From IMG/VR virus record IMGVR_UViG_3300042923_000281, positions 1 to 64,000 of that record: a stretch of 64,000 nt of DNA; one strand, given 5' to 3'. This document shows, one piece after another, positions 4,472-61,408 of the stretch. Position 1 is the stretch's first letter. Each line of letters begins with the position of its first letter. A model generated the notes under the pieces. The model saw only the letters and a list, made by a program, of their open reading frames with translations. It did not search any database and had not been told where the DNA came from. Position numbers and translations under genes: made by a program.

Positions 4472-4528
4472 GGTGTGTCCTCCTAAGGACTGGTAAGGTA
4501 AGTTTATTGCTTGGATCTCACTGGAATC

Positions 4529-42837: not shown

Positions 42838-42982
42838 TTATCGAGTCTCCCACGATAATGGTATGCCAGTTGTCTGATATTCAATATTAGACAAGCTTCG
42901 TTTTTAAGTAACGCCCCAAAGATTTCACGGCCCCTTTTCCAAGCGGCATCTGAACCGATGGAGATCCCAACGGAGAGCATAA

Positions 42983-46680: not shown

Positions 46681-46889
46681 TCACGCGTGCTCGTGGGTTG
46701 AACTCCGACGATTACCTGTTGACCGCCGGTGGCATGTTCGATCACGTGAACTCCGCTGACCACGATGCCCGTTACGCTCCGAAGAACGCTGCGGGTGTTG
46801 ACTGCTCGGTGCACTGGAACGGCAACGCCGCCTACATCTGGGGTGGTGGTGCGTGGCGCCAAGTCTGGCCGCCTCTGTGGCAAGACTGA
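45444..46889 (+). CDS. Second tail fibre-like protein with NPH repeats
   Basis: Paralogous YPLDLDG N-terminus, four repeats, Trp-rich end WGGGAWRQVWPPLWQD. Confidence 0.8.
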   Translation: MSVPPIIQYPLDLDGTSPTNKIVGERREISTNTARAFVPKAGPFYTSSFVIINADTGKPLVPVDDYVLVQPFSQASLRSGKDVQCAVVLKVQAPITVIMDYQVVGGEYSWNLSALADLIAQLNLDDRPIKWGSIIGRPTAYPPAPHIHDIGDTYGWEYVVWQLERITNAILVGDEASHDELRQQMQFIRDQLQANIDAVDLKIDNHLNDFNNPHQTTKAQVGLSLVENYQVASNAEALAGTVGNRYMTPTLVAILANRISQEITDAHEAKKNNPHAVTKAQVGLGSVDNFATATQAQAEAGAATNVFMTPQRTYQAIMVFAGNKINQHVADMNNPHNTTKAQVGLGLVDNFQTATAAEAQQGILNDRFMTPARTKAAIDAMVGNVINQHISNFNNPHNTTKAQVGLGNIPNNITRARGLNSDDYLLTAGGMFDHVNSADHDARYAPKNAAGVDCSVHWNGNAAYIWGGGAWRQVWPPLWQD

Positions 46890-46917
46890 TGTAAAACTAC
46901 CGCTTGAGGACTGCATC

Positions 46918-47424
46918 ATGTTTCAACGAATGGAAAACCTGTTCACTGAAATCAGTGAAGAACTGCTGGACCTCGATGTCCTGATGATGAGTCCTCATGT
47001 GTACGAGCAGGGCTTGGTGAAGTTTATCAAGAACGGCGGTAGTCACGATGTTTTCACTATTTCTGATTACCTTGAGATCGACGACTGTCCTGTCAAGGTA
47101 GAAGGCATGGAACGCCTCAACAGAACCATGTGGAACGTCTGTAAACGGTTGGCAGATCACTTCGGCCATGATGGCCCGGTGACCTGTCACCTGTTTATCT
47201 CCCCAAGGGACGGGGTAAGTTTCCCTATGCACACTGACTTGGACGATGTGGTTATCTACATGGTCACAGGACAAAAGACTTTCGAGTCACTGGACGGGTC
47301 GATGGACCTTGTAGCCGGTGACGCTATCTACATCCCGAGAGGTACGGAACACCGTGCCATCAACACTGACAGTTCCTTGATGCTGAGTTTCGGCCTGGAA
47401 CTCTTCACGGAAGCTAAACTGTGA
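46918..47424 (+). CDS. JmjC/cupin (RoxA/NO66-like) 2OG-Fe(II) hydroxylase
   Basis: FPMHTD..D, G-K, L.AGDAIYIPRGTEH; GAGGA RBS. Confidence 0.75.
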   Translation: MFQRMENLFTEISEELLDLDVLMMSPHVYEQGLVKFIKNGGSHDVFTISDYLEIDDCPVKVEGMERLNRTMWNVCKRLADHFGHDGPVTCHLFISPRDGVSFPMHTDLDDVVIYMVTGQKTFESLDGSMDLVAGDAIYIPRGTEHRAINTDSSLMLSFGLELFTEAKL

Positions 47425-48458
47425 ATCAAAAGACCATTTACGTCAAGACCACCGGTACTTGCAACCTGAACTGTCAGCACTGTTTCACCAACGGGAAGAA
47501 CGGGGATAAGACCCACTTCAACCCAGAGGCGACAGTGGCCTGGATCAAAGACTTTATGTCTCGGTATCCGGAAGACACTCATTACCACATCGAATTCCAC
47601 GGCGGGGAGCCTTTCCTTGTGCCGCTGGAGAAGATGAAGATCGTAGCCGATGCGTTCATTGAACAAGAGAACGTGTCCATGTGTGCCAACAGCAACTTGA
47701 CCTTCAAGCTGACTGACGCGCACATCGACTTCATCAAGCATTATTTTGGTGGTTACATTGGGACCAGTTGGGATCATTGGATTCGCTGGAGCAACGAGAA
47801 GCAGGTGAACCTGTGGAAGAGTAATCTTCGGTTGCTGAACTCCCACGACATTGACATTGGTCTCAAGGTGTCTGTCAGTCGTCCTCTTATCGAGACCACG
47901 CCTGATTGGTTCCTCGATCAGATGGAGGCCATTGCGGTGGACGATGTGTCACTGGAGCGTTTGACCCATGACGGCAGTGCTGAGGTCAATCCAGACATCT
48001 TCCCCAACAACGAGGCTCAGGATAACTGGTACCTCGCGCTTTATTTGCGTTACAAAGAACGGAACCCACGCGTAAAGATTCGCACCTTGGACATCATCGA
48101 GCAAAAGCTCAAGATGAAGATGGTGAAGGTCGACACCAACTGCCGTAACTGTGAGCAGAACCTTGTGACCATGAACCCAGACGGGTCGTTGTCCGGTTGC
48201 CCTAACGCAGCCACCAAGCTTCACCATGCCAAGTTAGAACAGGGCGTCGATGCGTTCCTTCAATCCGAATCTCGGGTCGAAGAGATCGTGACTGAATTGA
48301 CGTGGGGTGATACGTGCATTACGTGCGACGTGTTCGATCTATGTGGGGGCGATTGTCATCGACTTCCATGGCAGAAAGGCCGTTGTGGTGGTCTCAAGAA
48401 CACCCTTCGTTTTTTGTCGGGTCGAACTCAACAGTCCAACCTGATTATAAAGGTGTGA
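47421..48458 (+). CDS. Radical SAM/SPASM protein 1
   Basis: CNLNCQHC, FHGGEP; C-terminal CRNC..GC..CITCDVFDLCGGDC..C. Confidence 0.9.
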   Translation: MNQKTIYVKTTGTCNLNCQHCFTNGKNGDKTHFNPEATVAWIKDFMSRYPEDTHYHIEFHGGEPFLVPLEKMKIVADAFIEQENVSMCANSNLTFKLTDAHIDFIKHYFGGYIGTSWDHWIRWSNEKQVNLWKSNLRLLNSHDIDIGLKVSVSRPLIETTPDWFLDQMEAIAVDDVSLERLTHDGSAEVNPDIFPNNEAQDNWYLALYLRYKERNPRVKIRTLDIIEQKLKMKMVKVDTNCRNCEQNLVTMNPDGSLSGCPNAATKLHHAKLEQGVDAFLQSESRVEEIVTELTWGDTCITCDVFDLCGGDCHRLPWQKGRCGGLKNTLRFLSGRTQQSNLIIKV

Positions 48459-48459
48459 T

Positions 48460-48996
48460 ATGGCCGAAGTAATTACTCGGAACCGGATGGCCGTCAATGC
48501 CAACTCCATTCTGAAGAACAACATGAACAGTGGGATCAGTTGGGGTACGAATAACTACCCTGCCAACTCCCTGCCGGGCTGGTTTGCTGGAACGACTGCT
48601 GGGGTGGACTTCACTGCCGTGGCGGGTCACTTCCAAGCCGGTAAGCCCAGTGCGTCTCAGACAGTAGCTGTGCTGCGTAACATCGCTAACACCTTTGGTG
48701 GTGTGCGGACTACGCGGATCGTCATCTACTACAACAACAACGGGAACCTGCAAGTCCAGTACGATGGAACTGCGGTGGCCAACACTATATACGGTGTAGG
48801 TGATTTCGCCTCCCAAGCCAACCTTGCTGGCCTTGGAGTGAATACTCCATTGTCCTTGAACATGTTCAACGCTGCCTGTCAGGCGCTCTGGAACGTGTAC
48901 GTGGCCAACTGCCGGAACCAAGTCCTTACTCTGACCAACACCGTTTGCCACACGAGCTGTCACACCAGTTGCCACTCGTCCCGCGGTCGTCGGTAA
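48460..48996 (+). CDS. Asn/Gly-rich protein with C-terminal (CHxS)3-RGRR tail; candidate substrate of the cluster
   Basis: 178 aa, AAGG RBS, ends VCHTSCHTSCHSSRGRR. Confidence 0.8.
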   Translation: MAEVITRNRMAVNANSILKNNMNSGISWGTNNYPANSLPGWFAGTTAGVDFTAVAGHFQAGKPSASQTVAVLRNIANTFGGVRTTRIVIYYNNNGNLQVQYDGTAVANTIYGVGDFASQANLAGLGVNTPLSLNMFNAACQALWNVYVANCRNQVLTLTNTVCHTSCHTSCHSSRGRR

Positions 48997-49013
48997 TCAT
49001 CAAGGAGAACATC

Positions 49014-49823
49014 GTGGATCAGACTACCGAAGTGGAAGTCAAGAAAGAGCCTAACAAGCTACCTGAACCGCGCTTTGCAGCCATCGAAGGCCCGCAGGTT
49101 GTCATCGAGACAACCGTACCTGTACCTATCGCCATCATGCGCCGCAAGTTCAGTGAGAACATCAAGTTCATCGTGGACTACGACAACAGTCGCCACAAGG
49201 GCAAGGTGTTCATCACGTACCTCACCAACTTGAACGTTGAGTGTGAGCTGCGCTTTGGCTCAGTGGAGTCGAAACTGGAGCTGGTGAAAGAGTACCTGCA
49301 CATCACCTCCATGGTCGACCTGCCTCAGCTGGAAGACATCGTGATCAACCTGTTGCTGGCAGCGACGGGCAAGCCGTACCACTTGGACTTCAATCCTCTG
49401 GACTTCATTCTGGAGAACGAAGCGATCCTTCAGGTATGGATGCGTAACTGCTGCATGATCCCGACGTACGCCTTGCACAGTTACCCGCCGACTGAAGAGT
49501 TGGTAAAGAACTACGAAGAGATCCCAGGCGAAGACCTGACCGGTATCAACTTCGTGCACTTGGCCAGCCACCTGATGTTCCCGATGCTGATTTCCGACGT
49601 CCCTGAAGAGCACTGGTGCTGGAACAAGACGTTCTTCAAAGAGTACTGCTTCGGTGGTCACAACCTGTTCTACTACACGCAGTCGGAGAACAACCCGTTC
49701 TTCATGGCGTTGCTGGTGGTCAGTGAGCCGGAAGCAGTGGGTGATCTGGGGATTGCAGCGGCCACTATCCTGCAAGAAAACCACACTTACCTAAAGGGCC
49801 TCGAACATGTACCATCTGCTTAA
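49014..49823 (+). CDS. Hypothetical protein (rSAM cluster)
   Basis: AAGGAG RBS before GTG at 49014; 269 aa. Confidence 0.7.
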   Translation: MDQTTEVEVKKEPNKLPEPRFAAIEGPQVVIETTVPVPIAIMRRKFSENIKFIVDYDNSRHKGKVFITYLTNLNVECELRFGSVESKLELVKEYLHITSMVDLPQLEDIVINLLLAATGKPYHLDFNPLDFILENEAILQVWMRNCCMIPTYALHSYPPTEELVKNYEEIPGEDLTGINFVHLASHLMFPMLISDVPEEHWCWNKTFFKEYCFGGHNLFYYTQSENNPFFMALLVVSEPEAVGDLGIAAATILQENHTYLKGLEHVPSA

Positions 49824-50862
49824 CCAGACGTACGTCGATACTGAAACACGGATCGACCGTACGGCCAATACGATCACCATCTCCCCGCAGGTGGGCTTCG
49901 AGTACATCCCTCAGGCCAATGAGAAGGTCGGCACCCATTTGGGTTACGGCACCAGTCTCGATGCGTTCACGCCTGAGCAGTTCCTCGACCTCATGATTGC
50001 CGCGCGTGATCTGGAAGAGAAGGTCGTCATCTACACTGATGGTAAGACCTACGCTCGCATGTACGCCATGTTGATCAAAGCGGTGTTTCCAAGCATCGAC
50101 TTCGAGAACTTCCGCTGGTTCATGCTCTGCAAGAAGGCCACCTTCAACTCGATCATCGTAGCCATGGGTGAACCCCGTGTTGACGTGCTCTCGAGTGTGG
50201 TCATCAACACAGCGCTGTGCCAAGAGCTGTTCGATAAGGAAGAGGCTCTGCAAGAGGTCTTCAACGAACTGGTGGCAGAAGACGCCGATGCACTGTCGCT
50301 GGAATGGCACATTGCTCGACTGCGTACCGAAGACATTGCGGGAAAGATCCCTAAGGCAACCAAGACCATCCTGCGTCGTATCGCTCTGTCGAACGCCCAT
50401 GATGCCATGGATGTCTGGGCACGTCACTTGACCCGTCCTGAGTTCTGGGACATGGCCGGTGCTGACATGGAAACGTTGCTCAATGCACCGTCCGTGTTTG
50501 AAGGCTGCTTGGGTCTGCCTCACCTGGCCTCTCAGCAGTTGCTGCGTCCTGGCCTGTACGACTTCCGTCCGAACGATACGTGGATCAAAGGCATGCTGCG
50601 TGAAGCAGTGGACCTGATGCACCGTCTGGAAGACGACTCGTCGGCTGACCGTGCGGCTGAGATCCTGCGCTTGCTGGAAGACGACCGGAACATGGTAGAG
50701 GCAGCTAACTGCCTTGATCGTGTCAACCGGATGTTCAACGGCGAGATGCGGATTGCGTTGGCCATGCGTGACACAGGCAAGTACGACGAGAACCTCATTC
50801 GTCACATCCTGAACATGGAGCTGTCGAGCCTCAAGGCAGCTTTGGAAGGAGCGGCCTGGTAA
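49807..50862 (+). CDS. Hypothetical protein (rSAM cluster)
   Basis: 351-aa ORF overlapping both neighbours. Confidence 0.75.
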   Translation: MYHLLNQTYVDTETRIDRTANTITISPQVGFEYIPQANEKVGTHLGYGTSLDAFTPEQFLDLMIAARDLEEKVVIYTDGKTYARMYAMLIKAVFPSIDFENFRWFMLCKKATFNSIIVAMGEPRVDVLSSVVINTALCQELFDKEEALQEVFNELVAEDADALSLEWHIARLRTEDIAGKIPKATKTILRRIALSNAHDAMDVWARHLTRPEFWDMAGADMETLLNAPSVFEGCLGLPHLASQQLLRPGLYDFRPNDTWIKGMLREAVDLMHRLEDDSSADRAAEILRLLEDDRNMVEAANCLDRVNRMFNGEMRIALAMRDTGKYDENLIRHILNMELSSLKAALEGAAW

Positions 50863-51857
50863 TGGAACTGATCCCTGTAGTGAACATACTCAGGGAGAAG
50901 AAGGGTCGCCGTAAGGAGGCCCATCTGATCCTGTTCGAATGGTGCAACCTGCGGTGTTCCTTTTGCCATCAGGACCATGATTCCAAAGTGGGCTTCGATG
51001 CAGTTGACATGATCCGGAAAGCACAGACACTGATTGATTCGGTGGACAGTGAATCCGAGATCGTGATCAACATCACCGGCGGTGAACTGTTCATGGACGA
51101 TGTACCGGACTGGATGTTCGGCTACTACCTGACGATTGGCAAGATGCTGCTCGAGAACTTCCCTCATGCCAAACTGGTCTGGGGGACGAACTTGATCTTC
51201 AAGGACGTCTGGCGGGTAGCGCGGTTGATCCACATGCTGAGACCGTATGGCAAAGTCGTTCTGGCTACATCGTACGATCCGGCTGGCCGTTTCAATGAGA
51301 TGCAACGAGTCCGCTTCTTCGAGGTGCTTGAGGAAGTGGCTCCGTTGGTTGAAACTGTCAACGTGGTGATTACCAAGCAGAACATCGAATCGTTCCTTGC
51401 GGGGCGTGAAGGTCGTGAGGTGGCTTGGCTCTGTGAACAGTTCGACGTGTACTTCGACCACTACATCCCTAGCCAGATGTACGAGTACATTCAGCCGGAT
51501 GAAGAGCTCATCAGTGCGCTCTACCTGCACCTCAACAAGAAGTACCCCAACTCCTACCCGATCAAGGACTGGAAGGCTAACGTGATCAATGAGACCACGT
51601 GCCGCTCCACCAAGATCATCAACAAGGACGGCGTTGTCAGTACTTGTTGGTCTGAGGCGGGCAAGGGTGCGATCTTGGATGAGGCTGAAGGTCTGCGGGC
51701 TAAGGATGAAGCAGAGATTGCGTTCGTGGAACATTACGACTGCTTCTCCTGCGAGTACTACACCCGGTGTGGCTTGCGGTGCTTCCTCCATGACACTGTC
51801 TTGGGTGAGAAGTCCAAGGTGTGCAGCATCAAGACCATGTTCAAAGCAATTCTGTGA
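50862..51857 (+). CDS. Radical SAM protein 2
   Basis: CNLRCSFC, ITGGELF; C-terminal C..C..CFSCEYYTRCGLRC..C. Confidence 0.9.
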   Translation: MELIPVVNILREKKGRRKEAHLILFEWCNLRCSFCHQDHDSKVGFDAVDMIRKAQTLIDSVDSESEIVINITGGELFMDDVPDWMFGYYLTIGKMLLENFPHAKLVWGTNLIFKDVWRVARLIHMLRPYGKVVLATSYDPAGRFNEMQRVRFFEVLEEVAPLVETVNVVITKQNIESFLAGREGREVAWLCEQFDVYFDHYIPSQMYEYIQPDEELISALYLHLNKKYPNSYPIKDWKANVINETTCRSTKIINKDGVVSTCWSEAGKGAILDEAEGLRAKDEAEIAFVEHYDCFSCEYYTRCGLRCFLHDTVLGEKSKVCSIKTMFKAIL

Positions 51858-51870
51858 CACGACATACGGA

Positions 51871-51907
51871 GCATAGGGAGATGACATGGCGTCATCTCCA
51901 CTTATGC
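51871..51907 (+). terminator. GCATA...TATG hairpin inside the cluster
   Basis: GGAGATGAC/GTCATCTCC stem followed by TTATGCCGTTTT. Confidence 0.55.
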
Positions 51908-51994
51908 CGTTTTCTACACTTGGCCATACTAAACGTCCAGTGGTTATTTTTTTACATGAGGCATCTCTATGAATATATCTGGAGGGTAGCACCC

Positions 51995-52207
51995 ATGACC
52001 GATTCCATCTTGCCAATACGTCGCCGTACGCCACTCGTGCCTCGTATCTCCCGTAAACTGGGCGATGATGCGTGGCTTCGTGAGAAGCTCAAAGAAGCGC
52101 AGTGTCCAGAAGCAGAGCAACGCCGACGTGACTACCTCGGTCAATGGACCGCCCAGCCTGCTGATAAGGAAACGCCCGATGGACCTGATCGTCAAGCCGA
52201 CCGTTAA
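51995..52207 (+). CDS. 70-aa small protein
   Basis: GGAGG RBS; overlaps the start of rSAM 3. Confidence 0.55.
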   Translation: MTDSILPIRRRTPLVPRISRKLGDDAWLREKLKEAQCPEAEQRRRDYLGQWTAQPADKETPDGPDRQADR

Positions 52208-53267
52208 ATGTAACTTCAAGTGCACGTTCTGCTCGAGCACCCACCTCTCTGAAGATCCGAAAGAGATCGTAGAGCTGGAACAGATCGAGCGGTTCGTGCA
52301 ACGCTTCAATGTGAACACCATCATCGTCAACGGCGGTGATCCTCTGATGATGCCTCCTGAGTACTACTGGAGCCTCATCGAGATCCTAGACCGTAACGAC
52401 AGCGATGCGTCGATCAGCTTCACGTCCAACCTGTGGCCGTTCTACGTCAAGCCAGAGAAGTGGGAAGAACTGTTCAAGCATGAGCGCATGGGTGTCACGA
52501 CCTCCTTTCAGTACGGCGACAAGCGTCTGAAGGGCGATGGCAGTGTCTTTACCCAAGAAGACTTCCAGAAGGTCTCAGACCTCTTCCTGGAGCGCATTGG
52601 GTATCGTCCAGAGTTCATTGCGGTCATTGATCGGGACAACGAGCACACCGTGCTGGATACCGTGCGCCTAGCTAAGGAGATGGGCGTGGTGGCTAAGGTC
52701 AACTACGTCATGGGTTCAGGTCCTGAAGTGGTCCGGGGTGGCATCACCATCGGTGGACAGAACCAGTTCTTCACGCAGGCGGACATGTACGGTCACTACA
52801 TCGAGATCTACGACGCGGGTCTCATGGAGTGGGAAAGCAACACCAAGCAGATGGCCAAGCGACTTCAGCACAAGCACACCACGTGTCCACTGGCCCGTAA
52901 CTGTGATGAAGGTATCCGCACTCTGCAACCGGGTGGTGGGTACTTTTCCTGCGGTGCCTTTGCTGATGACGGCGCGTACCCGATTGACTTCGAGAAGGAG
53001 ATGACGACTGACGTGATAGCGTTGCCTCTGCGTTACGAAGCCGATCTGGATTCCATGAAGGAGTCGTGCTACACCTGCCCTATGTTTTCCATCTGCAATG
53101 GCTGCCGTAAGACCGTGGCTGACACCAAGCGGTTTGGGCTGGTTGAACACCACTGTCGCAAGATGAAAAGCCAAGCTGCCAAGATCATCGAAATCAATGG
53201 CATGTCCGCTCACCTAGAGCCGACGCCGTATGAAGACGAATCACTTCCTTTGATTGCGCGAGGTTAA
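52179..53267 (+). CDS. Radical SAM/SPASM protein 3
   Basis: MDLIVKPTVKCNFKCTFC, NGGDP; CPLARNC..C..CYTCPMFSICNGC..C. Confidence 0.9.
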   Translation: MDLIVKPTVKCNFKCTFCSSTHLSEDPKEIVELEQIERFVQRFNVNTIIVNGGDPLMMPPEYYWSLIEILDRNDSDASISFTSNLWPFYVKPEKWEELFKHERMGVTTSFQYGDKRLKGDGSVFTQEDFQKVSDLFLERIGYRPEFIAVIDRDNEHTVLDTVRLAKEMGVVAKVNYVMGSGPEVVRGGITIGGQNQFFTQADMYGHYIEIYDAGLMEWESNTKQMAKRLQHKHTTCPLARNCDEGIRTLQPGGGYFSCGAFADDGAYPIDFEKEMTTDVIALPLRYEADLDSMKESCYTCPMFSICNGCRKTVADTKRFGLVEHHCRKMKSQAAKIIEINGMSAHLEPTPYEDESLPLIARG

Positions 53268-53268
53268 C

Positions 53269-53484
53269 ATGTCCGTCCCTATCCTGGATCAAATGGCGTT
53301 CTTCCCACCCGGTCATGAACTCAAGCTTCAGATCCCTGAGGTCTTGAAGAAGATCGTGCTCAAGCGCTGTGTCGAAAGCGTTGACGACTTCCTCGACGTC
53401 GTGAGCGATTCCCGGGGTATTAAACTGAGCCCTTACCAGCGAGATTTCTACAAATGCCTAAGTCAAGAATCAACGTCTCGCTGA
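53269..53484 (+). CDS. 71-aa small protein
   Basis: GAGG RBS; fills the gap between rSAM 3 and rSAM 4. Confidence 0.55.
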   Translation: MSVPILDQMAFFPPGHELKLQIPEVLKKIVLKRCVESVDDFLDVVSDSRGIKLSPYQRDFYKCLSQESTSR

Positions 53485-54386
53485 ACCCGTGGTACTACTG
53501 CAACTTTCGGTGTGACTTCTGTTACCTCACTGAGCAGCAGTTAAGCGACAAGCGATTCATTCCGCTGGACGTCTTTGAACAACGCATTGATGAACTGCTG
53601 GAGCACTTTGAGATTGGCCACATCGACATCTACGGTGGGGAAGTCTTCCTGTTGCCTCAGCAGTACTTGATGGACATCAAAGACATTCTGCACATGCGAG
53701 GGATTGATGACATCGTCGTCGTGACCAACCTGTCGCACGTACCGGACATCGTCCACGACCCGGCATTTGACATCTCGGTGTCGTATGACTTCGGGGCGCG
53801 TGAGAAGCACGATCAGGTGTTGCAGAACATCTTCCAGCTCAGCAACAAGTTCAACATCCTGACGTTGGCAGGCCGTACGTTCTTGGATCTGGTGACTCCT
53901 GACGAGTACGTACAGACCATGAACGGGTTCCCACATCTGAAAGGCTGTGAGATCAAACCGTACAGTGCCAACCAAGCCAACGATCAGGACATCTCGTTCA
54001 AGGAGTTTGAGGAGTTCGTCTGGGCAGTCATCACCCACCCAGAGCGTAAGTTCTATTTCGAGAACGAGACTCAGGTCAAGGAAGCCGTAGAAGGCAGTCG
54101 TAATGCTTTCTCTGATGACCACATCTACATCACTCCGACTGGCGATTTCGCTGTACTGGAGTTTGACAAGGATGATCGTGAGTTCTTCCTGACCGTTGAT
54201 GGGGTTGAAGGTTACCTCAACTGGTGCGGACAAGAGTATGAGCGAGTAGCGGACAATCCGTTCTGTGCATCGTGTACGTTCCACGGCGGGTGTCTGTCTG
54301 AGCACTTGCGGGAAGTCACAACCCTTGAGAACTCCTGCAATGGGTTCAAGGGTCTCTTGTTAAAGTGGGTGGAGCATGGATCTTGA
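53454..54386 (+). CDS. Radical SAM protein 4
   Basis: CNFRCDFC, YGGEV; C-terminal CASCTFHGGCLSEH..C. Confidence 0.9.
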   Translation: MPKSRINVSLNPWYYCNFRCDFCYLTEQQLSDKRFIPLDVFEQRIDELLEHFEIGHIDIYGGEVFLLPQQYLMDIKDILHMRGIDDIVVVTNLSHVPDIVHDPAFDISVSYDFGAREKHDQVLQNIFQLSNKFNILTLAGRTFLDLVTPDEYVQTMNGFPHLKGCEIKPYSANQANDQDISFKEFEEFVWAVITHPERKFYFENETQVKEAVEGSRNAFSDDHIYITPTGDFAVLEFDKDDREFFLTVDGVEGYLNWCGQEYERVADNPFCASCTFHGGCLSEHLREVTTLENSCNGFKGLLLKWVEHGS

Positions 54387-55413
54387 ATTTGTAGAGCACC
54401 GGCAGCGGTTGGAAATCACCCTCGACATCTTTCGGGGGTGCCAACACCATTGTTCAGGGTGCATGATCGATAAGCAGTTGGGTGGGGACGTTGATGACAT
54501 TCCTCAACTGGCTGCTATGATCAAGGAAATGATGGAGGCTGGGTACGTGGCCTTTGACATGGGGATCGGTCCTACCGACTACATGTCCTCGGACAACACC
54601 AGCGACGTCATGAGTCATCCTGTCTTCCAAGAGATGGCGCAATGGTTCCATCAAGTGACGTTCAACGCAGCGTTCCTTGAGAAGGACATGGACAAGTACA
54701 AGGTGATGTGTGAGGAGATCGATGCCTCCATCCCCGGTAAGGCTGTCCGCTTCCTGATGCCGGCTGCTCCGCACTTCTTCAAGAGCGACAAGTTCGGCAA
54801 CATGATCACCGAGAAGCTTGAGTTCGTCAAAGAGCACCTGAAGGTCGCTTACTTGAACGAAGCGGGCTTTGTGGTCAACTGCACACACGAGACTGTGGGT
54901 GAGGATTTCGATGACTTGATGAAGAATGGGTTCGCTGTGGATTTCCCAGTGGACAAGGACGACATCTTGAACATCCCGTATGGTCGTCTCAAGGTCAAAG
55001 ACCTGATGACTGCTCAGCGGATCACCCGCATGTCTCACCGGATCACGCAGTTCTACTCAGGCCTCAATGGGACTGATGAGCGTCGTCGTAATCCTGACCT
55101 CTGTTACCACACCGGAACGATGGTCAATCTGCTGTACACCGGCGGTAAGCTGTATTGGGTGCCTTTTCTTAAAGACGACTGTCCGTTCCTTGAGGACGAG
55201 TTCGTCGTTCCTCGCCCCTGGTCTATGGATAACCTTCTGAACACCCGTCAGAAGGCCATGGAGCGCGCTATGGAGTATCTTAAAGACACTCCGTGCATGA
55301 GTTGCGTCTACATGAGTAGTTGTAGCGAAAAGGGGATCATCAATATCATGGAACGGATGCAGATCCGTGAATGCCTCGTGGGGTTGCAGTATGTCGACAA
55401 TGATTCAGAGTAG
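54376..55413 (+). CDS. Divergent radical SAM-like protein 5
   Basis: CQHHCSGC, no GGE motif; C-terminal CMSCVYMSSC..C. Confidence 0.7.
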   Translation: MDLEFVEHRQRLEITLDIFRGCQHHCSGCMIDKQLGGDVDDIPQLAAMIKEMMEAGYVAFDMGIGPTDYMSSDNTSDVMSHPVFQEMAQWFHQVTFNAAFLEKDMDKYKVMCEEIDASIPGKAVRFLMPAAPHFFKSDKFGNMITEKLEFVKEHLKVAYLNEAGFVVNCTHETVGEDFDDLMKNGFAVDFPVDKDDILNIPYGRLKVKDLMTAQRITRMSHRITQFYSGLNGTDERRRNPDLCYHTGTMVNLLYTGGKLYWVPFLKDDCPFLEDEFVVPRPWSMDNLLNTRQKAMERAMEYLKDTPCMSCVYMSSCSEKGIINIMERMQIRECLVGLQYVDNDSE

Positions 55414-56416
55414 AGCGTTCAACCTGACGCTTGAGATTCTACAAGGCTGTAAGTTCCAATGCGTCGGCTGTATGGTGGACAAGGACTTCGATCCCGGTCC
55501 CTTCAATAAAGACCGGCGTGAGCTGCTGGACATGGTCGATGACATGAAGGCTGCGGGCTATCGCCTGCGTGAATTCACCATCGGGCCTGTAGATGTGATC
55601 GCCTCCAAGGCCGGGGTGGACATCCTTGACCACCCGTTGATCTTCCAGTTGGCTCAGCGTTACGATTCGATGGTGTTGCCGCTGGCTCTGTTGACGGACG
55701 ACGGACTGGAGGAGCTGTGTGAGAAGGTCAACTTCCTGATGAAAGGGAAGTCCTTCACGATTGCCACCCCGTTCCCACTCAAGAGCACGTACAACCCCAA
55801 GCACCAAGAGCTGATCAACCGTCGTGTGCAGTACGTCATTGACCACCTGCCTGATGTGAAGTTCGAACTGCTCTACCTGACCGTGAACATGACCGGTGAC
55901 TCCATTGACCAGTTCAGTGTCGAGACCAATCAGGCCATTCATGAGTTGGACTTCGGGGTGAAACGGCTGGTGGAGTACGTGTTCCCTCATGTACGCAAAG
56001 GGTTCGATGACCTGATGAACCGTTCTGCCTTCCTGAGGGCTTTTGGGAAGTTCTGTGACGTGATTCACGCATGTAAGGACACAGAGTTCACCCGGTACCT
56101 GATCAAGCCTCTGGCGGACTCTCTGGAGGCCACGTATCGTTCGGGCAAGTTGTACTACACACCGACCTTGATCGAGAAGTTCCCGATCTTCCATCATGAC
56201 TTTGTCGTGCCGAAGCCATGGTGCAACGCAACCATCGAGCAGTTCGAGGAAGATCAGTACATGGAGCAGTTGGTCAACAACAGCAACAACCAACCGTGCA
56301 GCGATTGCATGCACTTGGACCGTTGTGCTCGCGGTGATGTTCAAGCCATCATGGCACACCTGTGCAGCACTGACTGCCTCGTCGACATGAAAAACCGTTG
56401 GGATGTGCCTGTATGA
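55391..56416 (+). CDS. Divergent radical SAM-like protein 6 (paralog of 5)
   Basis: CKFQCVGC; C-terminal CSDCMHLDRC..C. Confidence 0.7.
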   Translation: MSTMIQSRAFNLTLEILQGCKFQCVGCMVDKDFDPGPFNKDRRELLDMVDDMKAAGYRLREFTIGPVDVIASKAGVDILDHPLIFQLAQRYDSMVLPLALLTDDGLEELCEKVNFLMKGKSFTIATPFPLKSTYNPKHQELINRRVQYVIDHLPDVKFELLYLTVNMTGDSIDQFSVETNQAIHELDFGVKRLVEYVFPHVRKGFDDLMNRSAFLRAFGKFCDVIHACKDTEFTRYLIKPLADSLEATYRSGKLYYTPTLIEKFPIFHHDFVVPKPWCNATIEQFEEDQYMEQLVNNSNNQPCSDCMHLDRCARGDVQAIMAHLCSTDCLVDMKNRWDVPV

Positions 56417-56859
56417 TCAATGATAAATGGTGGGTCGATAAACGTTACAAGGTGGAGATCCCTGAGTGGCTTTTGGAACAGGCGTTCTGTGAAGTCAACA
56501 AGGAGTACATCGAAACTGAAACAGTTGTTGACTGGGCGCTGGAGAACATCCTGCCATTTGCTCAGAAGATGATGAGCACCCAAGACATCACAATCTGTGC
56601 CAACCATTTCCACATGGGAACGGCTGGCCTTACCCCTCATGACCACTTGCCTCATGCGTTCACGTCGATCCTGTATCTGACAGACGCTGAAGGTGAGCTG
56701 GTCATCCATCTACCGGACGGAAAGTTCATGCACGTCACACCAGAAGCAGGGTTGCTGGTTACGTTCCCTGCCCACCTGGTGCATCACGTCGAACAGTCCC
56801 CTTTTGACGAGCTTCGTGTCTCGTTGGCGAGCAACTATGAATTCACAACACCCGTATAA
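56413..56859 (+). CDS. 2OG-Fe(II) oxygenase
   Basis: PHDH, ILYL, FPAHLVHHV, RVS. Confidence 0.8.
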   Translation: MINDKWWVDKRYKVEIPEWLLEQAFCEVNKEYIETETVVDWALENILPFAQKMMSTQDITICANHFHMGTAGLTPHDHLPHAFTSILYLTDAEGELVIHLPDGKFMHVTPEAGLLVTFPAHLVHHVEQSPFDELRVSLASNYEFTTPV

Positions 56860-57271
56860 AGACTATCAGCGCCTCTACAACGAGATGGTGACTGATCACC
56901 CCGACGCATTTGCCAACATGGAGATCGTCGAATCCGAAGAGCTGGTGGACAACGCGTTGCATTACTTCCGTGAAGCGACGTTCCCGTTGTACTACCCGGC
57001 CAAGTCGTACTCGGTCGCGATCATCTACGCGTTCAAGCTGTTTGAACTCTACGGGATCGGGATCTACGACGCCTTGCGTGACGAAGACCTGTTCTTGGGT
57101 CAAGACCCTTTCTTCGTGCCGTACGACGAAGACCCAGACACCTACGACGCTATCCTGATTGGGTTGCAACAGATCCCGAACTGGATCGAGTCGGGCTGGG
57201 CACCGCAGACCGTCAAGTACTTCATGCTCGAGTGCACGGAGGAAGGGGTTCAATCCGTCCTTGGAGGTTAA
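56837..57271 (+). CDS. Acidic hypothetical protein
   Basis: 144 aa from MNSQHPY; overlaps the upstream gene. Confidence 0.7.
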   Translation: MNSQHPYKDYQRLYNEMVTDHPDAFANMEIVESEELVDNALHYFREATFPLYYPAKSYSVAIIYAFKLFELYGIGIYDALRDEDLFLGQDPFFVPYDEDPDTYDAILIGLQQIPNWIESGWAPQTVKYFMLECTEEGVQSVLGG

Positions 57272-57272
57272 C

Positions 57273-57830
57273 GTGGAAATCATCCAGCCCTGGAAAACCG
57301 AAATCGCTCGCATCAACGTCAGGGATCAGTTCGACATGGAGGCCTTTTCCAACGAGGTCTTCATGATGTACTCCATGACGCAAGGGGAAGCCAACTCGCA
57401 GGAGAAGATCAACGCTGAGAACTTCCCTGTCACGATGGACATGCGGGACAACCTCATCACCCCTCTGATTCAGAAGTTTGCCAAGCGCTGCTTCGACACG
57501 ACCTTGGACGACTTCTACGTCGAGACCAATGGCAAGTGGATAGAACCGGGTGAAGGCCTGTTCCCGCACTACCATCCAGGCTCTGTGGTATCCGCGATCT
57601 GCTACCCGTGTGACTCGAACAATGGCATGACCATGTTTGACCCACGGGGCAATGCGTGTCGCGGATACCCAAAACCTATGCGACAAGCCCACTTTGGCAA
57701 TTTCACGATCTCGCCACGGGCAGGGGACATCTTCATCTTCCCCAGCTATATCCAACACAGTGTCCCTCATGTGACGGAGGACATCAGACTGTCCCTGCTA
57801 CATGAGTACTACGTCACTCGAAACTTATAG
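57273..57830 (+). CDS. 2OG-Fe(II) oxygenase (TIGR02466-like)
   Basis: GGAGG RBS before GTG; PHYHP, FDPRG, FPSYIQHSV, RLS. Confidence 0.8.
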   Translation: MEIIQPWKTEIARINVRDQFDMEAFSNEVFMMYSMTQGEANSQEKINAENFPVTMDMRDNLITPLIQKFAKRCFDTTLDDFYVETNGKWIEPGEGLFPHYHPGSVVSAICYPCDSNNGMTMFDPRGNACRGYPKPMRQAHFGNFTISPRAGDIFIFPSYIQHSVPHVTEDIRLSLLHEYYVTRNL

Positions 57831-57841
57831 AAGGCTCGATA

Positions 57842-58393
57842 ATGAACATCATCCAACCTTGGAAGATCGAGATCGCCCAAATCAACCTGCTGGATAAGGT
57901 TGATAACGACGAACTCGCCAACGAGATTCACATGCTTCATTGCTTGTGTCCTCGTAGCAGCCAAACACCTCTGGACGTGACGCCTGAGCAGTTCCCTGCA
58001 TTGGCTCACTTCCGTGATGAGATCCTGCGTCCGATTGCTGAAGAATACATCCGTCGCTGCTTCGGTGTTGATCCGAAAGAGATCACCATCGACACCTTTG
58101 GCAAGTCGTTCGAGAACGGTGAATCCCTGGGGTCTCACCTGCATGGCAACAGCTGCCTGACCAGTGTGTACTACCCGGAAGATTCGAAAGCCGGTATGTC
58201 ACTGGTCGATCCTCGCTTCAATGCCTCGCGTGGTTATCCGCGTGCTGTGCGTGACACTCACTTCGGTGAGCATTACGTAGCGCCGAAGGCTGGTGACCTG
58301 TGGCTGATGCCAAGTTACATCCAACACAGCGTTGAAGCCAACCCGGCTGACATGCGTCTGTCCCTCATCAACGACTTCCACTTCAAGGCGTAA
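57842..58393 (+). CDS. 2OG-Fe(II) oxygenase (TIGR02466-like), tandem paralog
   Basis: HLH, DPR, PSYIQHSV, RLSL. Confidence 0.8.
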   Translation: MNIIQPWKIEIAQINLLDKVDNDELANEIHMLHCLCPRSSQTPLDVTPEQFPALAHFRDEILRPIAEEYIRRCFGVDPKEITIDTFGKSFENGESLGSHLHGNSCLTSVYYPEDSKAGMSLVDPRFNASRGYPRAVRDTHFGEHYVAPKAGDLWLMPSYIQHSVEANPADMRLSLINDFHFKA

Positions 58394-58395
58394 TC

Positions 58396-59049
58396 ATGGC
58401 TGACGAACAACCTCTTTACCTGGGTGCGGATCGTGGACACTTCCGTACCATGCGTTTGATCGACAACGCAGGTGTGGTACTGCGAGCCAACTGCCGGATC
58501 AAAGAAGCCACGGTCTTCAACTACCTGAGCGACCTTCAGTACGCCATCGTGGGTTACTCCATTGAATGGTGGCCTGAACAAGACCCTGCTCCGCACTTGG
58601 GTGGTGAAGCGCATCCGTACATCCCGCGCAATCGCCCGAACGTGACCAAGCTGTACTTCCGCATGAAGACCTCGGCCACCTCGAAGATGCTGCATCTGGA
58701 AGACGCGATCATCAACGACTTCCTGAACAGCAAAGTGCTGGCAGAGCCGATGACGTTGCAGTCCTTCTCTCAAGAAGCGGCTGAGCAGATCACCAGTTCC
58801 AGTAAATGGCGCGTGTTGCAGAAGTCCCAGTGGGATTACTCCAACGCCGTGCACATCACCAAGTACGAAGCGACCTCCAACGCTCCGTTGACGCTGGTGC
58901 AAGAAGGGCTGCGCTTTGACTGGCGTCTGACTGGTCGTGATGATCAGATGGAAGCGGCGCAGATGAGCAACTATCCCTTCGCCAAACTCCGGGACTGCTA
59001 CCCGGCCATGCAAACCTACCTTGAAGGGCTCCACAATGGCAGCAACTAA
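58396..59049 (+). CDS. Hypothetical protein
   Basis: 217 aa, coupled to the endolysin. Confidence 0.7.
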   Translation: MADEQPLYLGADRGHFRTMRLIDNAGVVLRANCRIKEATVFNYLSDLQYAIVGYSIEWWPEQDPAPHLGGEAHPYIPRNRPNVTKLYFRMKTSATSKMLHLEDAIINDFLNSKVLAEPMTLQSFSQEAAEQITSSSKWRVLQKSQWDYSNAVHITKYEATSNAPLTLVQEGLRFDWRLTGRDDQMEAAQMSNYPFAKLRDCYPAMQTYLEGLHNGSN

Positions 59050-59758
59050 AGAACAACTGAAGGAACTCCAGCGTAACCTCAAAGCGCTGGGTTTCTACAC
59101 GGGCATCATCGACGGTCTGTGGGGCGGTGCCTCTCACGGTGCTTTCCTGAACGCTCGCCGGAAGGCCGTGAACATGTCGAAGCCGTCTACGGCTGCCGAC
59201 GGTATCAATGGCTTGCTGTTTGCTTACTGCAAGGCTCCTGCGTGGTCTGTCAAGGTCTCCGATGAGTTCCTGCGCAAGACCAACAAGATCGCGACCGATC
59301 TGGCCCTGCCATGGGACGGTACTGACACCCTGATGGCCTGCATGGCGTTCGAGAGTGGCTTCAGTCCGACTATCCAGAATGGTGCAGGTGCTCCGTTCTA
59401 CGGTCTGATCCAGTTCGGTGCCGCAGCAGCCAAGGACTCGGGTACCACGATCCCTGCGCTGTTGAAGATGTCGGCCGAGCAACAACTCGACTACGTCTAC
59501 AACTTCTTCAAGCCGTACAAGGGCAAGCTGAAGACCCTCAGCGACATCTACATGCGCATCCTCCTACCTACTGCTGTGGGCAAGCCGGAAGACTACGTGC
59601 TGTTCAGCGAAGCGAACACCAAGTCCAAGGCCTACCTTCAGAACAAAGGGCTGGATGCCAACCGTGATGGTCTGATCACCAAAGCGGAAGCCGCTGCCAA
59701 GGTAGCGCAGAAGTACGTCGACGGTCTGCACCCGAACAACCTGCGCATCGCAGCGTAA
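59036..59758 (+). CDS. Modular endolysin (PG-binding + lysozyme-like/lytic transglycosylase domain)
   Basis: LQRNLKALGFYTGIIDGLWG PG_binding_1 pattern; MAFESGF..GLIQF; DANRDGLITKAE. Confidence 0.85.
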   Translation: MAATKEQLKELQRNLKALGFYTGIIDGLWGGASHGAFLNARRKAVNMSKPSTAADGINGLLFAYCKAPAWSVKVSDEFLRKTNKIATDLALPWDGTDTLMACMAFESGFSPTIQNGAGAPFYGLIQFGAAAAKDSGTTIPALLKMSAEQQLDYVYNFFKPYKGKLKTLSDIYMRILLPTAVGKPEDYVLFSEANTKSKAYLQNKGLDANRDGLITKAEAAAKVAQKYVDGLHPNNLRIAA

Positions 59759-59774
59759 CAAAGAAAAAAGAAAG

Positions 59775-59808
59775 ACGTGAGAGGGAGCCCTAGGGCTCCC
59801 TCTTATGC
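59775..59808. terminator. Bidirectional hairpin terminator
   Basis: GAGGGAGCCCTAGGGCTCCCTC + TATG, A-tract on the left, between convergent genes. Confidence 0.7.
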
Positions 59809-59811
59809 CGT

Positions 59812-60552: not shown

Positions 60553-60607
60553 GGTGATTCCTAAATGATGAAAAAGAAAAGAACCCGAAGGCTCTTTTCT
60601 GTAGGTG

Positions 60608-60991
60608 TTAATCGAACGGCCACTGTCCTTTCGACGGAGGGATCTCAATGACCGTGATGTTTTCTTTTGGTTGTTTCTCCACCGCCTCGAAGTACTCCTG
60701 AGCAGCTTTCGCTTGCTCGGGGGTCGGAGGTGGGAAGAAGACCTCATCGATGATCTGACTGATCTCACGAACGTCGCGCTTGTTACCTTCAGCGTCAATG
60801 AAGTAGCCAGTGACGCCTTTAGGACCCGGTGTGCTGTCGTTCAACCCCTCGACCACGTCACGCAGTACCGCTTTGCAGTACTTGAGTTTCATGGTCAGTG
60901 AGGCATTGTTCAACCGCTGACGGACATTCGACAGGTCTGGTTTGATTTTCATCTTGGCTTGCATGTCCAAGACTTCTTGACTCAGGCTCAT
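60608..60991 (-). CDS. Hypothetical protein
   Basis: 127 aa, AAGGAG RBS. Confidence 0.7.
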   Translation of the reverse strand: MSLSQEVLDMQAKMKIKPDLSNVRQRLNNASLTMKLKYCKAVLRDVVEGLNDSTPGPKGVTGYFIDAEGNKRDVREISQIIDEVFFPPPTPEQAKAAQEYFEAVEKQPKENITVIEIPPSKGQWPFD

Positions 60992-61001
60992 GTCGCGCTC
61001 C

Positions 61002-61382: not shown

Positions 61383-61408
61383 GGTTCTACTCCGGAGTAG
61401 CGGTTAGG

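Follow-up and report, generated by a model that had tools for sequence, protein, structure and literature searches.

A radical-SAM gene cassette linked to a Cys/His-tailed protein encoded behind phage tail-fibre genes and proposed to mature it

Gene content and organization of the cassette

The 64,000-nucleotide stretch of jumbo phage DNA that was analysed (IMG/VR record IMGVR_UViG_3300042923_000281, positions 1 to 64,000; hereafter the window) contains, at positions 46918-59049, a block of 16 tightly packed genes, all on the + strand, with two further short ORFs that are doubtful. The block comprises six radical-SAM (rSAM) proteins with an N-terminal CxxxCxxC motif and C-terminal SPASM/twitch-like Cys clusters, one JmjC/cupin, three PF13759 2OG-Fe(II) oxygenases, five unknowns, and a 178-aa protein ending VCHTSCHTSCHSSRGRR, confirming the gene content proposed in an earlier note made from the sequence alone. 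Most junctions overlap or lie within 13 nt, the only real gaps being about 140-320 nt before rSAM3 and about 190 nt before rSAM4. Upstream of the block lie two tail-fibre-like genes, gene 1 (42983-45373, +, 796 aa) and gene 2 (45444-46889, +, 481 aa), which match PHROG virion-structural, tail, and tail-fibre families with E values down to 4.5e-131 and tail and fibre families with E values down to 8.8e-133, respectively, and gene 1 is syntenic in phages DT01 and RSL2. The block starts 28 nt after the stop of gene 2. As the earlier note had stated, no + strand terminator-like site lies at this junction, and terminator-like sites in the region are no more frequent than in shuffled sequences.

The first gene of the cassette (46918-47424, +) encodes a JmjC/cupin Fe(II) oxygenase of 168 aa, which matches JmjC_2 (PF08007) at 36.1 bits (cut-off 22) and Cupin_2 (PF07883) at 34.4 bits and contains the triad H105-x-D107...H145; a homologue precedes rSAM1 in 66 loci. 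It is followed by rSAM1 (47421-48458, +), with CxxxCxxC at residue 14 and a full 7-Cys SPASM pattern, and by the gene for the 178-aa protein (48460-48996, +), hereafter the CHxS protein, which ends in CHTSCHTSCHSSRGRR and is the only such ORF in the 64-kb window. Immediately downstream is unknown A (49014-49823, +, 269 aa), which has a GTG start behind an AAGGAG Shine-Dalgarno sequence, matches phrog_20767, and has no Pfam, PDB, or Foldseek match despite a predicted structure with a pLDDT of 90.8. Unknown B (49807-50862, +, 351 aa) has no family match, but homologues were found in 29 loci, always between A and rSAM2.

The remaining rSAM genes are rSAM2 (50862-51857, +), with CxxxCxxC at residue 28, a SPASM Cys pattern, a match to phrog_1802, and a conserved position in 70 loci; rSAM3 (52065 or 52179-53267, +, the likely start being ATG 52179), a SPASM-type enzyme by its Cys pattern; rSAM4 (53454-54386, +), with a shorter, twitch-like C-terminal Cys cluster; and rSAM5 (54376-55413, +) and rSAM6 (55367-56416, +), which form a separate type, rSAM5 being divergent. 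In all six the CxxxCxxC motif lies at residues 14-49 and is accompanied by C-terminal CxxCx5C(x3C) clusters. Pfam Radical_SAM (PF04055) matches five of the six, including rSAM3 (50.4 bits), rSAM4 (35 bits), and rSAM6 (20.9 bits), but only two of these matches exceed the gathering score. rSAM5 has no Pfam hit, yet it carries the motif at residue 22 and a C-terminal CxxCx5C and is a paralogue of rSAM6 (E 2.5e-36). A small ORF of 70 aa and unknown function (51995-52207, +) precedes rSAM3 and is conserved with DT01 gp061, sharing an 'RDY..W..QP' stretch with positions 10553-10732 of locus L001.

The 3′ part of the cassette contains 2OG_a (56413-56859, +), unknown C (56837-57271, +, 144 aa), 2OG_b (57267-57830, +), 2OG_c (57842-58393, +), and unknown D (58396-59049, +, 217 aa). 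The three oxygenases match PF13759 above its cut-off of 27 (29.4, 45.5, and 44.8 bits, respectively), with 2OG_c being a paralogue of 2OG_b (E 8e-51). Unknown C matches phrog_20737 (E 5.7e-39) and follows rSAM4 in 21 loci, whereas unknown D has no family match and is conserved only in close relatives (2 loci). The end of the cassette overlaps a peptidoglycan-binding transglycosylase gene (59036-59758, +). The description of this last gene as an endolysin in the earlier note is only loosely supported, as the PG_binding and SLT Pfam hits are weak, while phrog_4928 (E 1.1e-63) and phrog_196 (baseplate hub) match strongly and the DT01 orthologue is annotated as a putative transglycosylase.

Conservation of the CHxS tail and its co-occurrence with radical-SAM genes

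The CHxS protein is composed of an α/β domain, predicted by AlphaFold2 to be folded (pLDDT 90.8) with no fold match in the PDB, and a C-terminal tail, V-CHTS-CHTS-CHSS-RGRR (C-terminal peptide NQVLTLTNTVCHTSCHTSCHSSR). The tail is conserved where the rest of the protein varies: the window protein and its DT01 orthologue are 57% identical overall, but from C163 the tail is identical except for one residue. All 87 clusters found by homology end in the tail, as do 124 of 140 further representatives, most of the rest carrying variants, and the tail defines a family of at least 693 clusters at 50% identity. Position X3 of each H-x-x triad is restricted to S, N, or A. Loci found with a DNA pattern have the Cys, His, and Arg positions fixed by construction, and only the homology-derived sets test those positions. 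Synonymous codons vary freely in 154 distinct tails, and the conserved Ser uses both AGY and TCN codons, so selection acts on the peptide. The same tail is also found on unrelated carrier domains (hhalign probability 2% with tails trimmed), each time with rSAM genes, and it therefore behaves as a portable substrate module.

The CHxS gene and the enzymes are almost never found apart. In loci seeded on the tail, an rSAM gene abuts upstream in 61 of 67 cases, A, which appears to be an obligate partner, abuts downstream in 60 of 67, and an rSAM gene lies within 1.5 kb in 76 of 82. Seeding on rSAM1 gave 397 viral contigs, and 76 of 78 assessable loci have a CH-tail ORF ending a median of 590 nt downstream. 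The two exceptions carry four CHxS repeats fused to a Peptidase_S74 tail-fibre chaperone domain; in this variant (loci L190/L191) the repeats are followed by Peptidase_S74 (44.8 bits, cut-off 22), the self-cleaving chaperone domain of trimeric fibres and spikes. Genes of the rSAM5 type belong to a second module type, with 3-6 tandem copies following pairs of about 130-aa CHxS genes in roughly 25 loci. The system is wider than the earlier note, which described a jumbo-phage cluster, had supposed: it also occurs in T4-like marine myophage contigs and in genomes of Bdellovibrionota, predatory Bdellovibrio-like bacteria.

This two-way co-occurrence bears on whether the enzymes could serve DNA or nucleotide modification or a general boosting of host metabolism, with the linkage to the CHxS protein being incidental. 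The DT01 paper ascribes its six rSAM genes to DNA repair and metabolism boosting, RSL2-type phages have a dihydrofolate reductase gene inside the cluster, and rSAM enzymes do take part in thymidine hypermodification in other phages. However, the co-occurrence is far too tight to be incidental, the dihydrofolate reductase gene was seen only in RSL2-type phages and is absent from the window and DT01, the cassette lies in the structural, host-recognition region, and the enzymes carry SPASM-type auxiliary clusters and match peptide maturases best. This explanation is therefore considered highly unlikely.

Association with tail-fibre genes and virions

The cassette sits directly behind tail-fibre genes in 9 loci of the DT01/RSL2 type, and in 71 further loci it follows fibre proteins of a different type with collagen repeats and a shared C-terminal domain, a domain that the fibre genes of the window lack. 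In pelagimyophages, rSAM cassettes lie in the 'host recognition cluster' (PMC7029224). A homologue of the CHxS protein in Agrobacterium phage Atu_ph07, gp170 (31.9 kDa), ends in CHSSCHASCHNSRSRR and was detected in virions with 8 peptides and 35% coverage, whereas gp165-169, 171, and 172, which include the orthologue of A (gp169), were not detected. Moreover, gp170 peaked in the top gel band (band 1), alongside proteins of 87-139 kDa, whereas proteins of about 30 kDa normally peak in bands 7-8. Three times 31.9 kDa is 96 kDa, which fits an SDS-stable trimer, although a high apparent mass in SDS-PAGE is common for unmodified fibre trimers and the Atu_ph07 fibres gp288, gp327, and gp472 also run high. 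RSL2 ORF068 is not annotated as a virion protein, although its neighbour ORF065 is, and in at least one Bdellovibrionota genome the system is chromosomal with no obvious phage context, so that a role outside virions is possible.

An alternative is that the Cys/His tail is an unmodified metal-binding site, for example layers of Cys3 and His3 on the axis of a trimer, with the enzymes acting on a different target such as the upstream tail-fibre protein or a host envelope component. The Cys and His residues repeat with period 4 and the tail is modelled by AlphaFold2 as a short helix, albeit at low confidence, so they would line one face, and metal sites probably occur on the threefold axes of other phage fibres and spikes. 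A tail-fibre gene also lies next to the cassette in most loci. Conversely, the upstream fibres are extremely diverse (387-2800 aa) and those of the window lack the domain that the others share, so they offer no common recognition motif. The CHxS tail is the only near-invariant peptide and tracks the rSAM genes in both directions, and neither the restriction of X3 nor the conserved R-G-R-R-COOH is explained by metal binding alone. This reading appears unlikely, but the two ideas are not mutually exclusive.

It is also conceivable, but very doubtful, that the tail is the precursor of a released small product, such as a cofactor, a metallophore, or an antimicrobial RiPP, in the manner of PQQ or mycofactocin, with the N-terminal domain being only a large leader. 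A conserved C-terminal core with a variable N-terminal part resembles PqqA and MftA, SPASM enzymes make such products, and several tailoring oxygenases are present. However, no peptidase or exporter is recognisable in the cassette by family searches, and the N-terminal domain is confidently predicted to be folded and has its own invariant residues (P34, R86, and D102). The presence of gp170 in virions and the variant with a fibre chaperone domain after the repeats also argue against a released product.

Proposed function and comparison with characterized systems

Taken together, these data support the proposal of the earlier note that the enzymes modify a phage protein, most likely the 178-aa protein. 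The favoured explanation, held with moderate confidence, is that the cassette is a dedicated post-translational maturation system for one protein of the host-recognition (tail-fibre) module, in which the tail, [VI]-C-H-x-S-C-H-x-[S/N]-C-H-x-[S/A]-R-G-R-R-COOH, would be the shared recognition and modification site. The rSAM/SPASM enzymes (rSAM1-4, plus the separate rSAM5/6 type) would install carbon-carbon or carbon-sulfur cross-links on the His, Ser, and Cys residues, one possibility being a three-residue His-to-Cβ cyclophane on each H-x-S triad, and the JmjC/cupin and the three PF13759 oxygenases would hydroxylate or oxidise tail residues (His, Arg, or Cys). Cross-linking and oxidation remain inferences, as no mass-spectrometric or biochemical evidence of any modification exists for this family. 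No protease is recognisable in the cassette, so the modified tail would stay on the protein, which is probably a trimer that becomes part of the virion near the fibres or baseplate, while the enzymes and the partner proteins A, B, and C would not be packaged. The likely outcome would be a rigid, chemically stapled, and possibly metal-binding C-terminal cap that stabilises the host-recognition apparatus or takes part in its function. In agreement with the earlier note, which knew of no characterised system of this kind in phages, literature searches revealed no paper describing this system and only passing notes of 'radical SAM genes'.

The enzymes belong to the peptide- and protein-modifying rSAM/SPASM clade, although all similarities to characterised maturases fall far below the family cut-offs, so the chemistry cannot be read from homology. 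For rSAM1, TIGR04085 (SPASM) just passes its cut-off (27.6 against 27), full-length weak matches were found to DarE, DynA, and anSME, and the closest PDB relatives are 8vpo, 4k36, and 5wgg; rSAM3 likewise has full-length weak matches to DynA and anSME. The best NCBIfam hit of rSAM1 is YhhB (51 bits against a cut-off of 445), a characterised His-modifying cyclophane synthase. The triceptide (three-residue cyclophane) maturases YhhB, HaaB, HtkB, FxsB, and GrrM are rSAM/SPASM enzymes that act on aromatic-X-X triads, including His-x-x, often in tandem repeats (PMC11499958), and X3 is a small residue here, as in the HAA motif. In the present system, however, the substrate would be a folded protein of 125-365 aa rather than a short leader-core peptide, each His is preceded by a conserved Cys, and many more enzymes are involved. 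SPASM-domain enzymes are also known to modify Cys or Ser in ribosomal proteins or peptides, as with QhpD on QhpC, anSME on sulfatases, the CteB/PapB sacti- and ranthipeptide synthases, and the methanogen protein thioether system (PMC13692751). anSME and CteB are among the closest solved relatives of rSAM1, but there is no family membership, the substrate motif differs, the context is viral, and the cassette is combined with JmjC and 2OG oxygenases.

The closest characterised analogue is the bacterial HXS antiphage system (HxsA-D; PMC13128918), in which two rSAM enzymes and a small protein mature a full-length, DNA-binding effector with short His-x-Ser repeats rich in basic residues, the modification being mapped to SHRSS and remaining on the protein. 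HXS is bacterial and defensive, whereas the present system is phage-encoded and probably structural, with six rSAMs and four Fe(II) oxygenases. HxsA has a peptidoglycan-binding domain, N-terminal processing and export, and five HxS repeats without Cys, compared with three C-H-x-S units at the extreme C terminus followed by RGRR-COOH. A phage counterpart of HXS, in which a matured basic protein would act in the periplasm on DNA entry, either helping the phage's own genome to enter or excluding competing phages, is possible but improbable. The phage tail reads SCHSSRGRR and is basic, a virion-borne protein near the baseplate could be delivered into the periplasm, and a peptidoglycan-binding transglycosylase is translationally coupled to the cassette. 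However, matches to HxsB and HxsC are no better than to many other rSAM families (28 and 21-24 bits against cut-offs of 370 and 268), and there is no significant family-level match to HxsA, B, C, or D. The CHxS protein matches neither HxsA nor any other NCBIfam model and has no peptidoglycan-binding domain and no evident signal peptide, and its conserved Cys residues are not part of the HxS motif.

In genomic position, the cassette resembles tail-fibre accessory genes (T4 gp38 and Tfa-type proteins), which also lie directly behind the fibre gene, and the Peptidase_S74 variant recalls the self-cleaving fibre chaperone domains Peptidase_S74 and Peptidase_G2. No sequence or fold similarity to any known fibre chaperone or adhesin was found, and no known fibre accessory protein has a dedicated enzymatic maturation system. 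The short CHxS genes of about 130 aa overlap the stop of the fibre gene by about 10 nt.

Gene content of the cassette and the CHxS tail family

The region 46918-59049 is a run of 16 co-oriented + strand genes, with two additional short ORFs of doubtful status, and most junctions overlap or lie within 13 nt. It begins 28 nt after the second of two tail-fibre-like genes (42983-45373 and 45444-46889), which match PHROG tail, fibre, and virion-structural families with E down to 1e-131 to 1e-133, and ends overlapping the gene for a putative peptidoglycan-binding transglycosylase. Both fibre-like proteins contain several copies of a repeat of about 60 aa with the motif NNPHxxTKAQVGLGxVxN, for which Pfam gave no hit at E 0.1. 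No + strand terminator-like site lies at the junction between the fibre genes and the cassette, and such sites are no more frequent in the region than in shuffled sequence. The only strong intrinsic-terminator-like hairpin in the scanned 42000-61500 stretch (60600-60575, - strand; an 11-bp stem followed by a T run) lies inside a mechanically called minus-strand ORF (59812-60798), just beyond the cassette.

All six of the proposed radical-SAM proteins carry an N-terminal CxxxCxxC, the motif for the SAM-binding [4Fe-4S] cluster, at residues 14-49, together with C-terminal Cys clusters of the type associated with SPASM/twitch auxiliary-cluster domains. The full CX2CX5CX3C pattern with flanking Cys residues is seen in rSAM1-3, whereas rSAM4-6 show CxxCx5C plus further Cys residues. 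Pfam PF04055 matches five of the six, two of them above the gathering score, and TIGR04085 scores 27.6 bits against a cut-off of 27 for rSAM1 but is below the cut-off for rSAM2. No Pfam hit was obtained for rSAM5, although it is a clear paralogue of rSAM6 (E 2.5e-36), and rSAM1-4 are mutually very distant. The cupin is JmjC_2/Cupin_2 (PF08007) with an HxD...H triad, and three further proteins match the 2OG-Fe(II) oxygenase family PF13759. These four proteins all score above their cut-offs, and the iron-binding triads were located. A 70-aa ORF (51995-52207, +) in the gap before rSAM3 shares an 'RDY..W..QP' stretch with the 60-aa gene gp061 of the Pseudomonas jumbo phage pPa_SNUABM_DT01 (DT01). 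It overlaps the long reading of rSAM3, which probably starts at ATG 52179. The second doubtful ORF (53254-53484, 76 aa) has homologues only in DT01-like loci (L001, L007, and L075).

The 178-aa CHxS protein (48460-48996) ends VCHTSCHTSCHSSRGRR, with the tryptic C-terminal peptide NQVLTLTNTVCHTSCHTSCHSSR, and is the only such ORF in the window. The observation made in the earlier note, of a multi-radical-SAM/oxygenase cluster next to the tail-fibre genes, is therefore confirmed.

The closest cultured relative is the 265-kb phage DT01, which is 73-75% identical in nucleotide sequence over this region, with the whole cassette syntenic. The DT01 paper only lists 'six radical SAM genes' and links them to DNA repair and metabolism. 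A DT01-like jumbo phage (JPTI55) that transduces genomic islands in P. fluorescens SBW25 has also been described (bioRxiv 10.1101/2024.08.29.610337).

A homology search with the 178-aa protein returned 87 clusters of 108-193 aa (all but one 174-193 aa), every one of which ends in C-H-x-S-C-H-x-x-C-H-x-x-R-x-R-R, five of them with an extra Gly or a substitution at one position. Between the window and DT01 the protein is 57% identical overall, yet the tail from C163 is identical except for one residue. An exhaustive profile search found 693 representative clusters at 50% identity with E <= 1e-3. Of 140 new top hits, 124 end in the strict tail, and most of the rest are variants with two or four repeats, RSRR endings, or truncated contigs. 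Across 234 distinct tails the consensus is [VI]-C-H-[S/T/A]-S(93%)-C-H-x-[S 67%/N 29%]-C-H-x-[S 73%/A 22%]-R-G-R-R-COOH, where the Cys, His, and Arg positions of the pattern-derived loci are fixed by the search and are tested only by the homology-derived sets. Codon usage shows that the constraint is on the peptide, as TGT/TGC and CAT/CAC are each used about equally and the conserved Ser uses both AGY and TCN codons.

Co-occurrence of the tail and the radical-SAM genes

Two architectures were found in loci seeded on the tail. The common one is cupin - rSAM1 - [CHxS protein] - A - (B) - rSAM2 - rSAM3 - (2OG) - rSAM4 - C - 2OG, where A, B, and C are proteins of unknown function, whereas the second has one or two tandem CHxS genes of about 130 aa followed by three to six rSAM5-type genes. 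In about 25 viral loci of the second kind (L003, L021, L028, L057, L078, and about 20 others), tandem pairs of CHxS proteins of about 126-140 aa sit directly behind a giant (1500-2800 aa) fibre gene and are followed by 3-6 paralogous rSAM5-type genes, with no cupin, rSAM1, or A. Searches by tblastn with the 259-aa and the about 130-aa CHxS types found no cultured phage. The window and DT01 combine both enzyme sets with a single CHxS gene.

For the long form, an rSAM abuts upstream in 61 of 67 loci, A abuts downstream in 60 of 67, and an rSAM lies within 1.5 kb in 76 of 82. The reverse test, which started from an rSAM1 alignment and is independent of the tail, found 397 viral contigs. Of the best 80 loci, 78 had enough downstream sequence, and 76 of those have a CH-tail ORF ending a median of 590 nt after rSAM1. 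One contig recovered with rSAM1 (L174, IMGVR_UViG_3300042923_000281, 276,978 bp) is 100% identical to the rSAM1 of the window over all 345 residues (match 3501-4535). The N-terminal domains of the short and long forms are unrelated (hhalign probability 2% with the tails removed). The tail is therefore a portable module that comes with radical-SAM genes, which is the behaviour expected of a substrate or recognition motif and is the strongest argument that the CHxS protein is the target.

This linkage also bears on the possibility that the enzymes serve DNA or nucleotide modification, which would call for only a loose association with the CHxS gene. A nucleotide-related role was considered because RSL2/RSF1/FLC6-type phages have a dihydrofolate reductase gene inserted in the middle of the cassette, between two rSAM genes (Ralstonia phage RSL2, 10690-11226). 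However, that gene was seen only in RSL2-type phages and not in the window or DT01, and the linkage of the enzymes to the CHxS gene is too tight for this explanation.

Evidence for a virion role and the predicted structure of the CHxS protein

In the window, DT01, and RSL2 the cassette follows the two fibre-like genes. In 71 other loci the ORF just upstream is a fibre-like protein of 387-2800 aa; these proteins have collagen repeats and PHROG tail-fibre matches, and share a C-terminal domain of about 145 aa that weakly matches Peptidase_G2 (24 bits against a cut-off of 25). The short CHxS genes overlap the stop codon of that fibre gene by about 10 nt, the usual place of fibre accessory genes. 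A study of pelagimyophages noted radical-SAM cassettes inside the 'host recognition cluster' downstream of VrlC (PMC7029224). A gp8-like baseplate gene on contig L049 returned 537 cyanophage and pelagiphage hits, which say nothing about the CHxS family and only show that this contig is a T4-like marine myophage. An alternative is that the tail is an unmodified metal site and that the enzymes act on another target. This would need a common motif in that target, and the fibres are too diverse to offer one.

The Agrobacterium jumbo phage Atu_ph07 has the cassette (gp172-gp165), and its gp170 (296 aa) ends FCHSSCHASCHNSRSRR. It is also the best non-family structural neighbour of our model in BFVD. 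In the published virion ESI-MS/MS table, gp170 (31.89 kDa) has 8 unique peptides and 35% coverage, and was found in bands 1-9 but was most abundant in band 1, where proteins of 87-139 kDa peak, whereas proteins of 29-34 kDa normally peak in bands 7-8 (PMC6102473, Table S5). The products gp165-169, 171, and 172 are absent from the list. Three times 31.9 kDa is 96 kDa, which fits an SDS- and heat-stable trimer, although it does not prove covalent linkage because unmodified fibres also run high. Presence in virions is thus shown for this homologue rather than for the phage of the window, and RSL2 ORF068 is not flagged as structural. The Ralstonia phage RP31 has its own rSAM/MoaA/MgoB gene group (ORF72-76) and a nearby 22.9-kDa virion protein of unknown function, ORF78 (PMC5468394, Table S3), but this protein could not be linked to the family, as no RP12 or RP31 record appeared among the tblastn hits with the rSAM1 of the window.

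The two loci in the rSAM1-seeded set that lacked a terminal tail (L190, 4553-5500, and L191) encode a 315-aa homologue with four CHxS repeats, in which the RGRR end is replaced by a Gly/Asp-rich linker and a Peptidase_S74 intramolecular chaperone domain (PF13884, 44.8 bits against a cut-off of 22, with the SDERLK site). That domain is the self-cleaving module of trimeric tail fibres and spikes. The representative P0198 belongs to the same variant, and several others (P0170, P0174, and P0218) end in CH..CH..CH..CHGDGPG... and may be this variant cut off at contig ends.

AlphaFold2 gives a confident compact α/β domain for residues 1-163 of the CHxS protein (mean pLDDT 90.8) and a low-confidence helical tail. 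No significant fold match was found in the PDB (best E 0.4), and BFVD gave only uncharacterised phage proteins. Partner A is also confidently modelled (pLDDT 90.8), with no Pfam, PDB, or Foldseek match (best E 0.68). Sequence or profile searches of A, B, C, and the unknown protein D against the PDB were uninformative, as were those of rSAM1, and Pfam and NCBIfam scans of A, B, C, D, and the small ORFs found nothing. NCBIfam has no model for any CHxS protein, including one from Bdellovibrionota. A classical RiPP cluster would be expected to contain a short leader-core precursor, with a leader peptidase and/or an exporter. By contrast, the proposed substrate is predicted to be a folded protein and no peptidase or transporter domain was found in the cassette, so that the system is RiPP-like in enzymology only. 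Together with the detection of the homologue in virions, this argues against a released cofactor or RiPP as the product.

Proposed chemistry and distribution beyond phages

Alignment of rSAM1 and rSAM3 with SPASM peptide and protein maturases (YhhB, PapB, DarE, DynA, and anSME) extends over their full length, but far below the family cut-offs. The closest solved relatives of an rSAM1 profile are 8vpo, anSME 4k36, CteB 5wgg, ChlB 9gm3, and SuiB 5v1q. The best NCBIfam hit of rSAM1 is YhhB, at 51.1 bits against a cut-off of 445, and the other curated cyclophane synthase families (AmcB, FxsB, and GrrM) score 24-42 bits against 310-425, which is resemblance and not membership. The tail offers three conserved H-x-[S/N/A] triads, and characterised rSAM/SPASM 'triceptide' synthases cross-link His-C2 to the C-β of the third residue in H-x-x motifs (HaaB on HAA, YhhB on HNR, and HtkB on HTK; PMC11499958). 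It is possible that similar cross-links form on the CHxS tail. The three invariant Cys residues are candidates for thioether formation by other SPASM enzymes. Relatives of JmjC_2 may hydroxylate Arg or His in proteins, and the tail has three of each.

The bacterial HXS system shows that rSAM enzymes do mature a His-x-Ser repeat protein, with a modification mapped to SHRSS (PMC13128918). A phage version of HXS acting on DNA entry was considered, but no family-level match supports it. HxsB and HxsC were not recognised in the cassette (TIGR03978, 28.3 bits against 370; TIGR03977, 20.8-24.1 bits against 268). The CHxS protein matches no NCBIfam or Pfam model, has H-x-S triads that are spaced by Cys, and lacks a peptidoglycan-binding domain, and neither small ORF matches any NCBIfam model, HxsD included. 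As none of these family memberships is reached at curated cut-offs, the comparison concerns how the system may work.

Taken together, the comparative and proteomic evidence supports the proposal of the earlier note that a dedicated machinery cross-links and oxidises a phage protein, most likely the 178-aa protein, although the chemistry and function are inferred. The enzymology belongs to a known kind, SPASM radical-SAM maturation of ribosomal products, whereas the substrate family, the accessory proteins, the virion and host-recognition context, and the spread across phages and predatory bacteria are new. Our literature searches found only incidental mentions of these genes. To our knowledge, radical-SAM maturation has not been described for virion proteins, and the known covalent stabilisation, such as the HK97 capsid cross-links, is self-catalysed. 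A machine of about ten genes that appears devoted to one 16-residue tail, conserved across at least 693 protein clusters in jumbo phages, marine T4-like myophages, and predatory bacteria, implies a strong and general selective benefit at the host-recognition step. Such a system would add radical-SAM chemistry on Cys-His-x-Ser motifs, explain the 'radical SAM cassettes' repeatedly noted in phage genome papers, give a phage-side counterpart to the HXS defence system, and possibly provide a portable tag for enzymatic stapling of proteins. The proposed substrate, the enzymes, and several cultivable phages (DT01, RSL2/FLC6, Atu_ph07, and JPTI55-like) are now identified.

A more far-reaching and only tentative possibility is that phages of Gram-negative bacteria and predatory Bdellovibrionota share a previously unrecognised class of enzymatically 'stapled' surface proteins. 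Here, the three C-terminal CHxS-RGRR tails of a trimeric host-recognition protein would be covalently cross-linked, within or between chains, and oxidised by a dedicated battery of radical-SAM and Fe(II) enzymes, giving a rigid, possibly metal-binding cap needed for adsorption or envelope penetration. This would be the first enzyme-installed radical cross-link in a virion protein.

Beyond phages, about 22 of the 34 prokaryotic-genome hits are in Bdellovibrionota MAGs, including 2.4- and 2.8-Mb contigs, with the same partner genes. Several other hits are probably phage contigs binned into MAGs. On a 2.84-Mb Bacteriovoracaceae contig (L161) the CHxS gene lies beside A, rSAM-like genes, and a 2355-aa Ig/RCC1/WD40 surface-type protein, and the surrounding genes are ordinary chromosomal ones.
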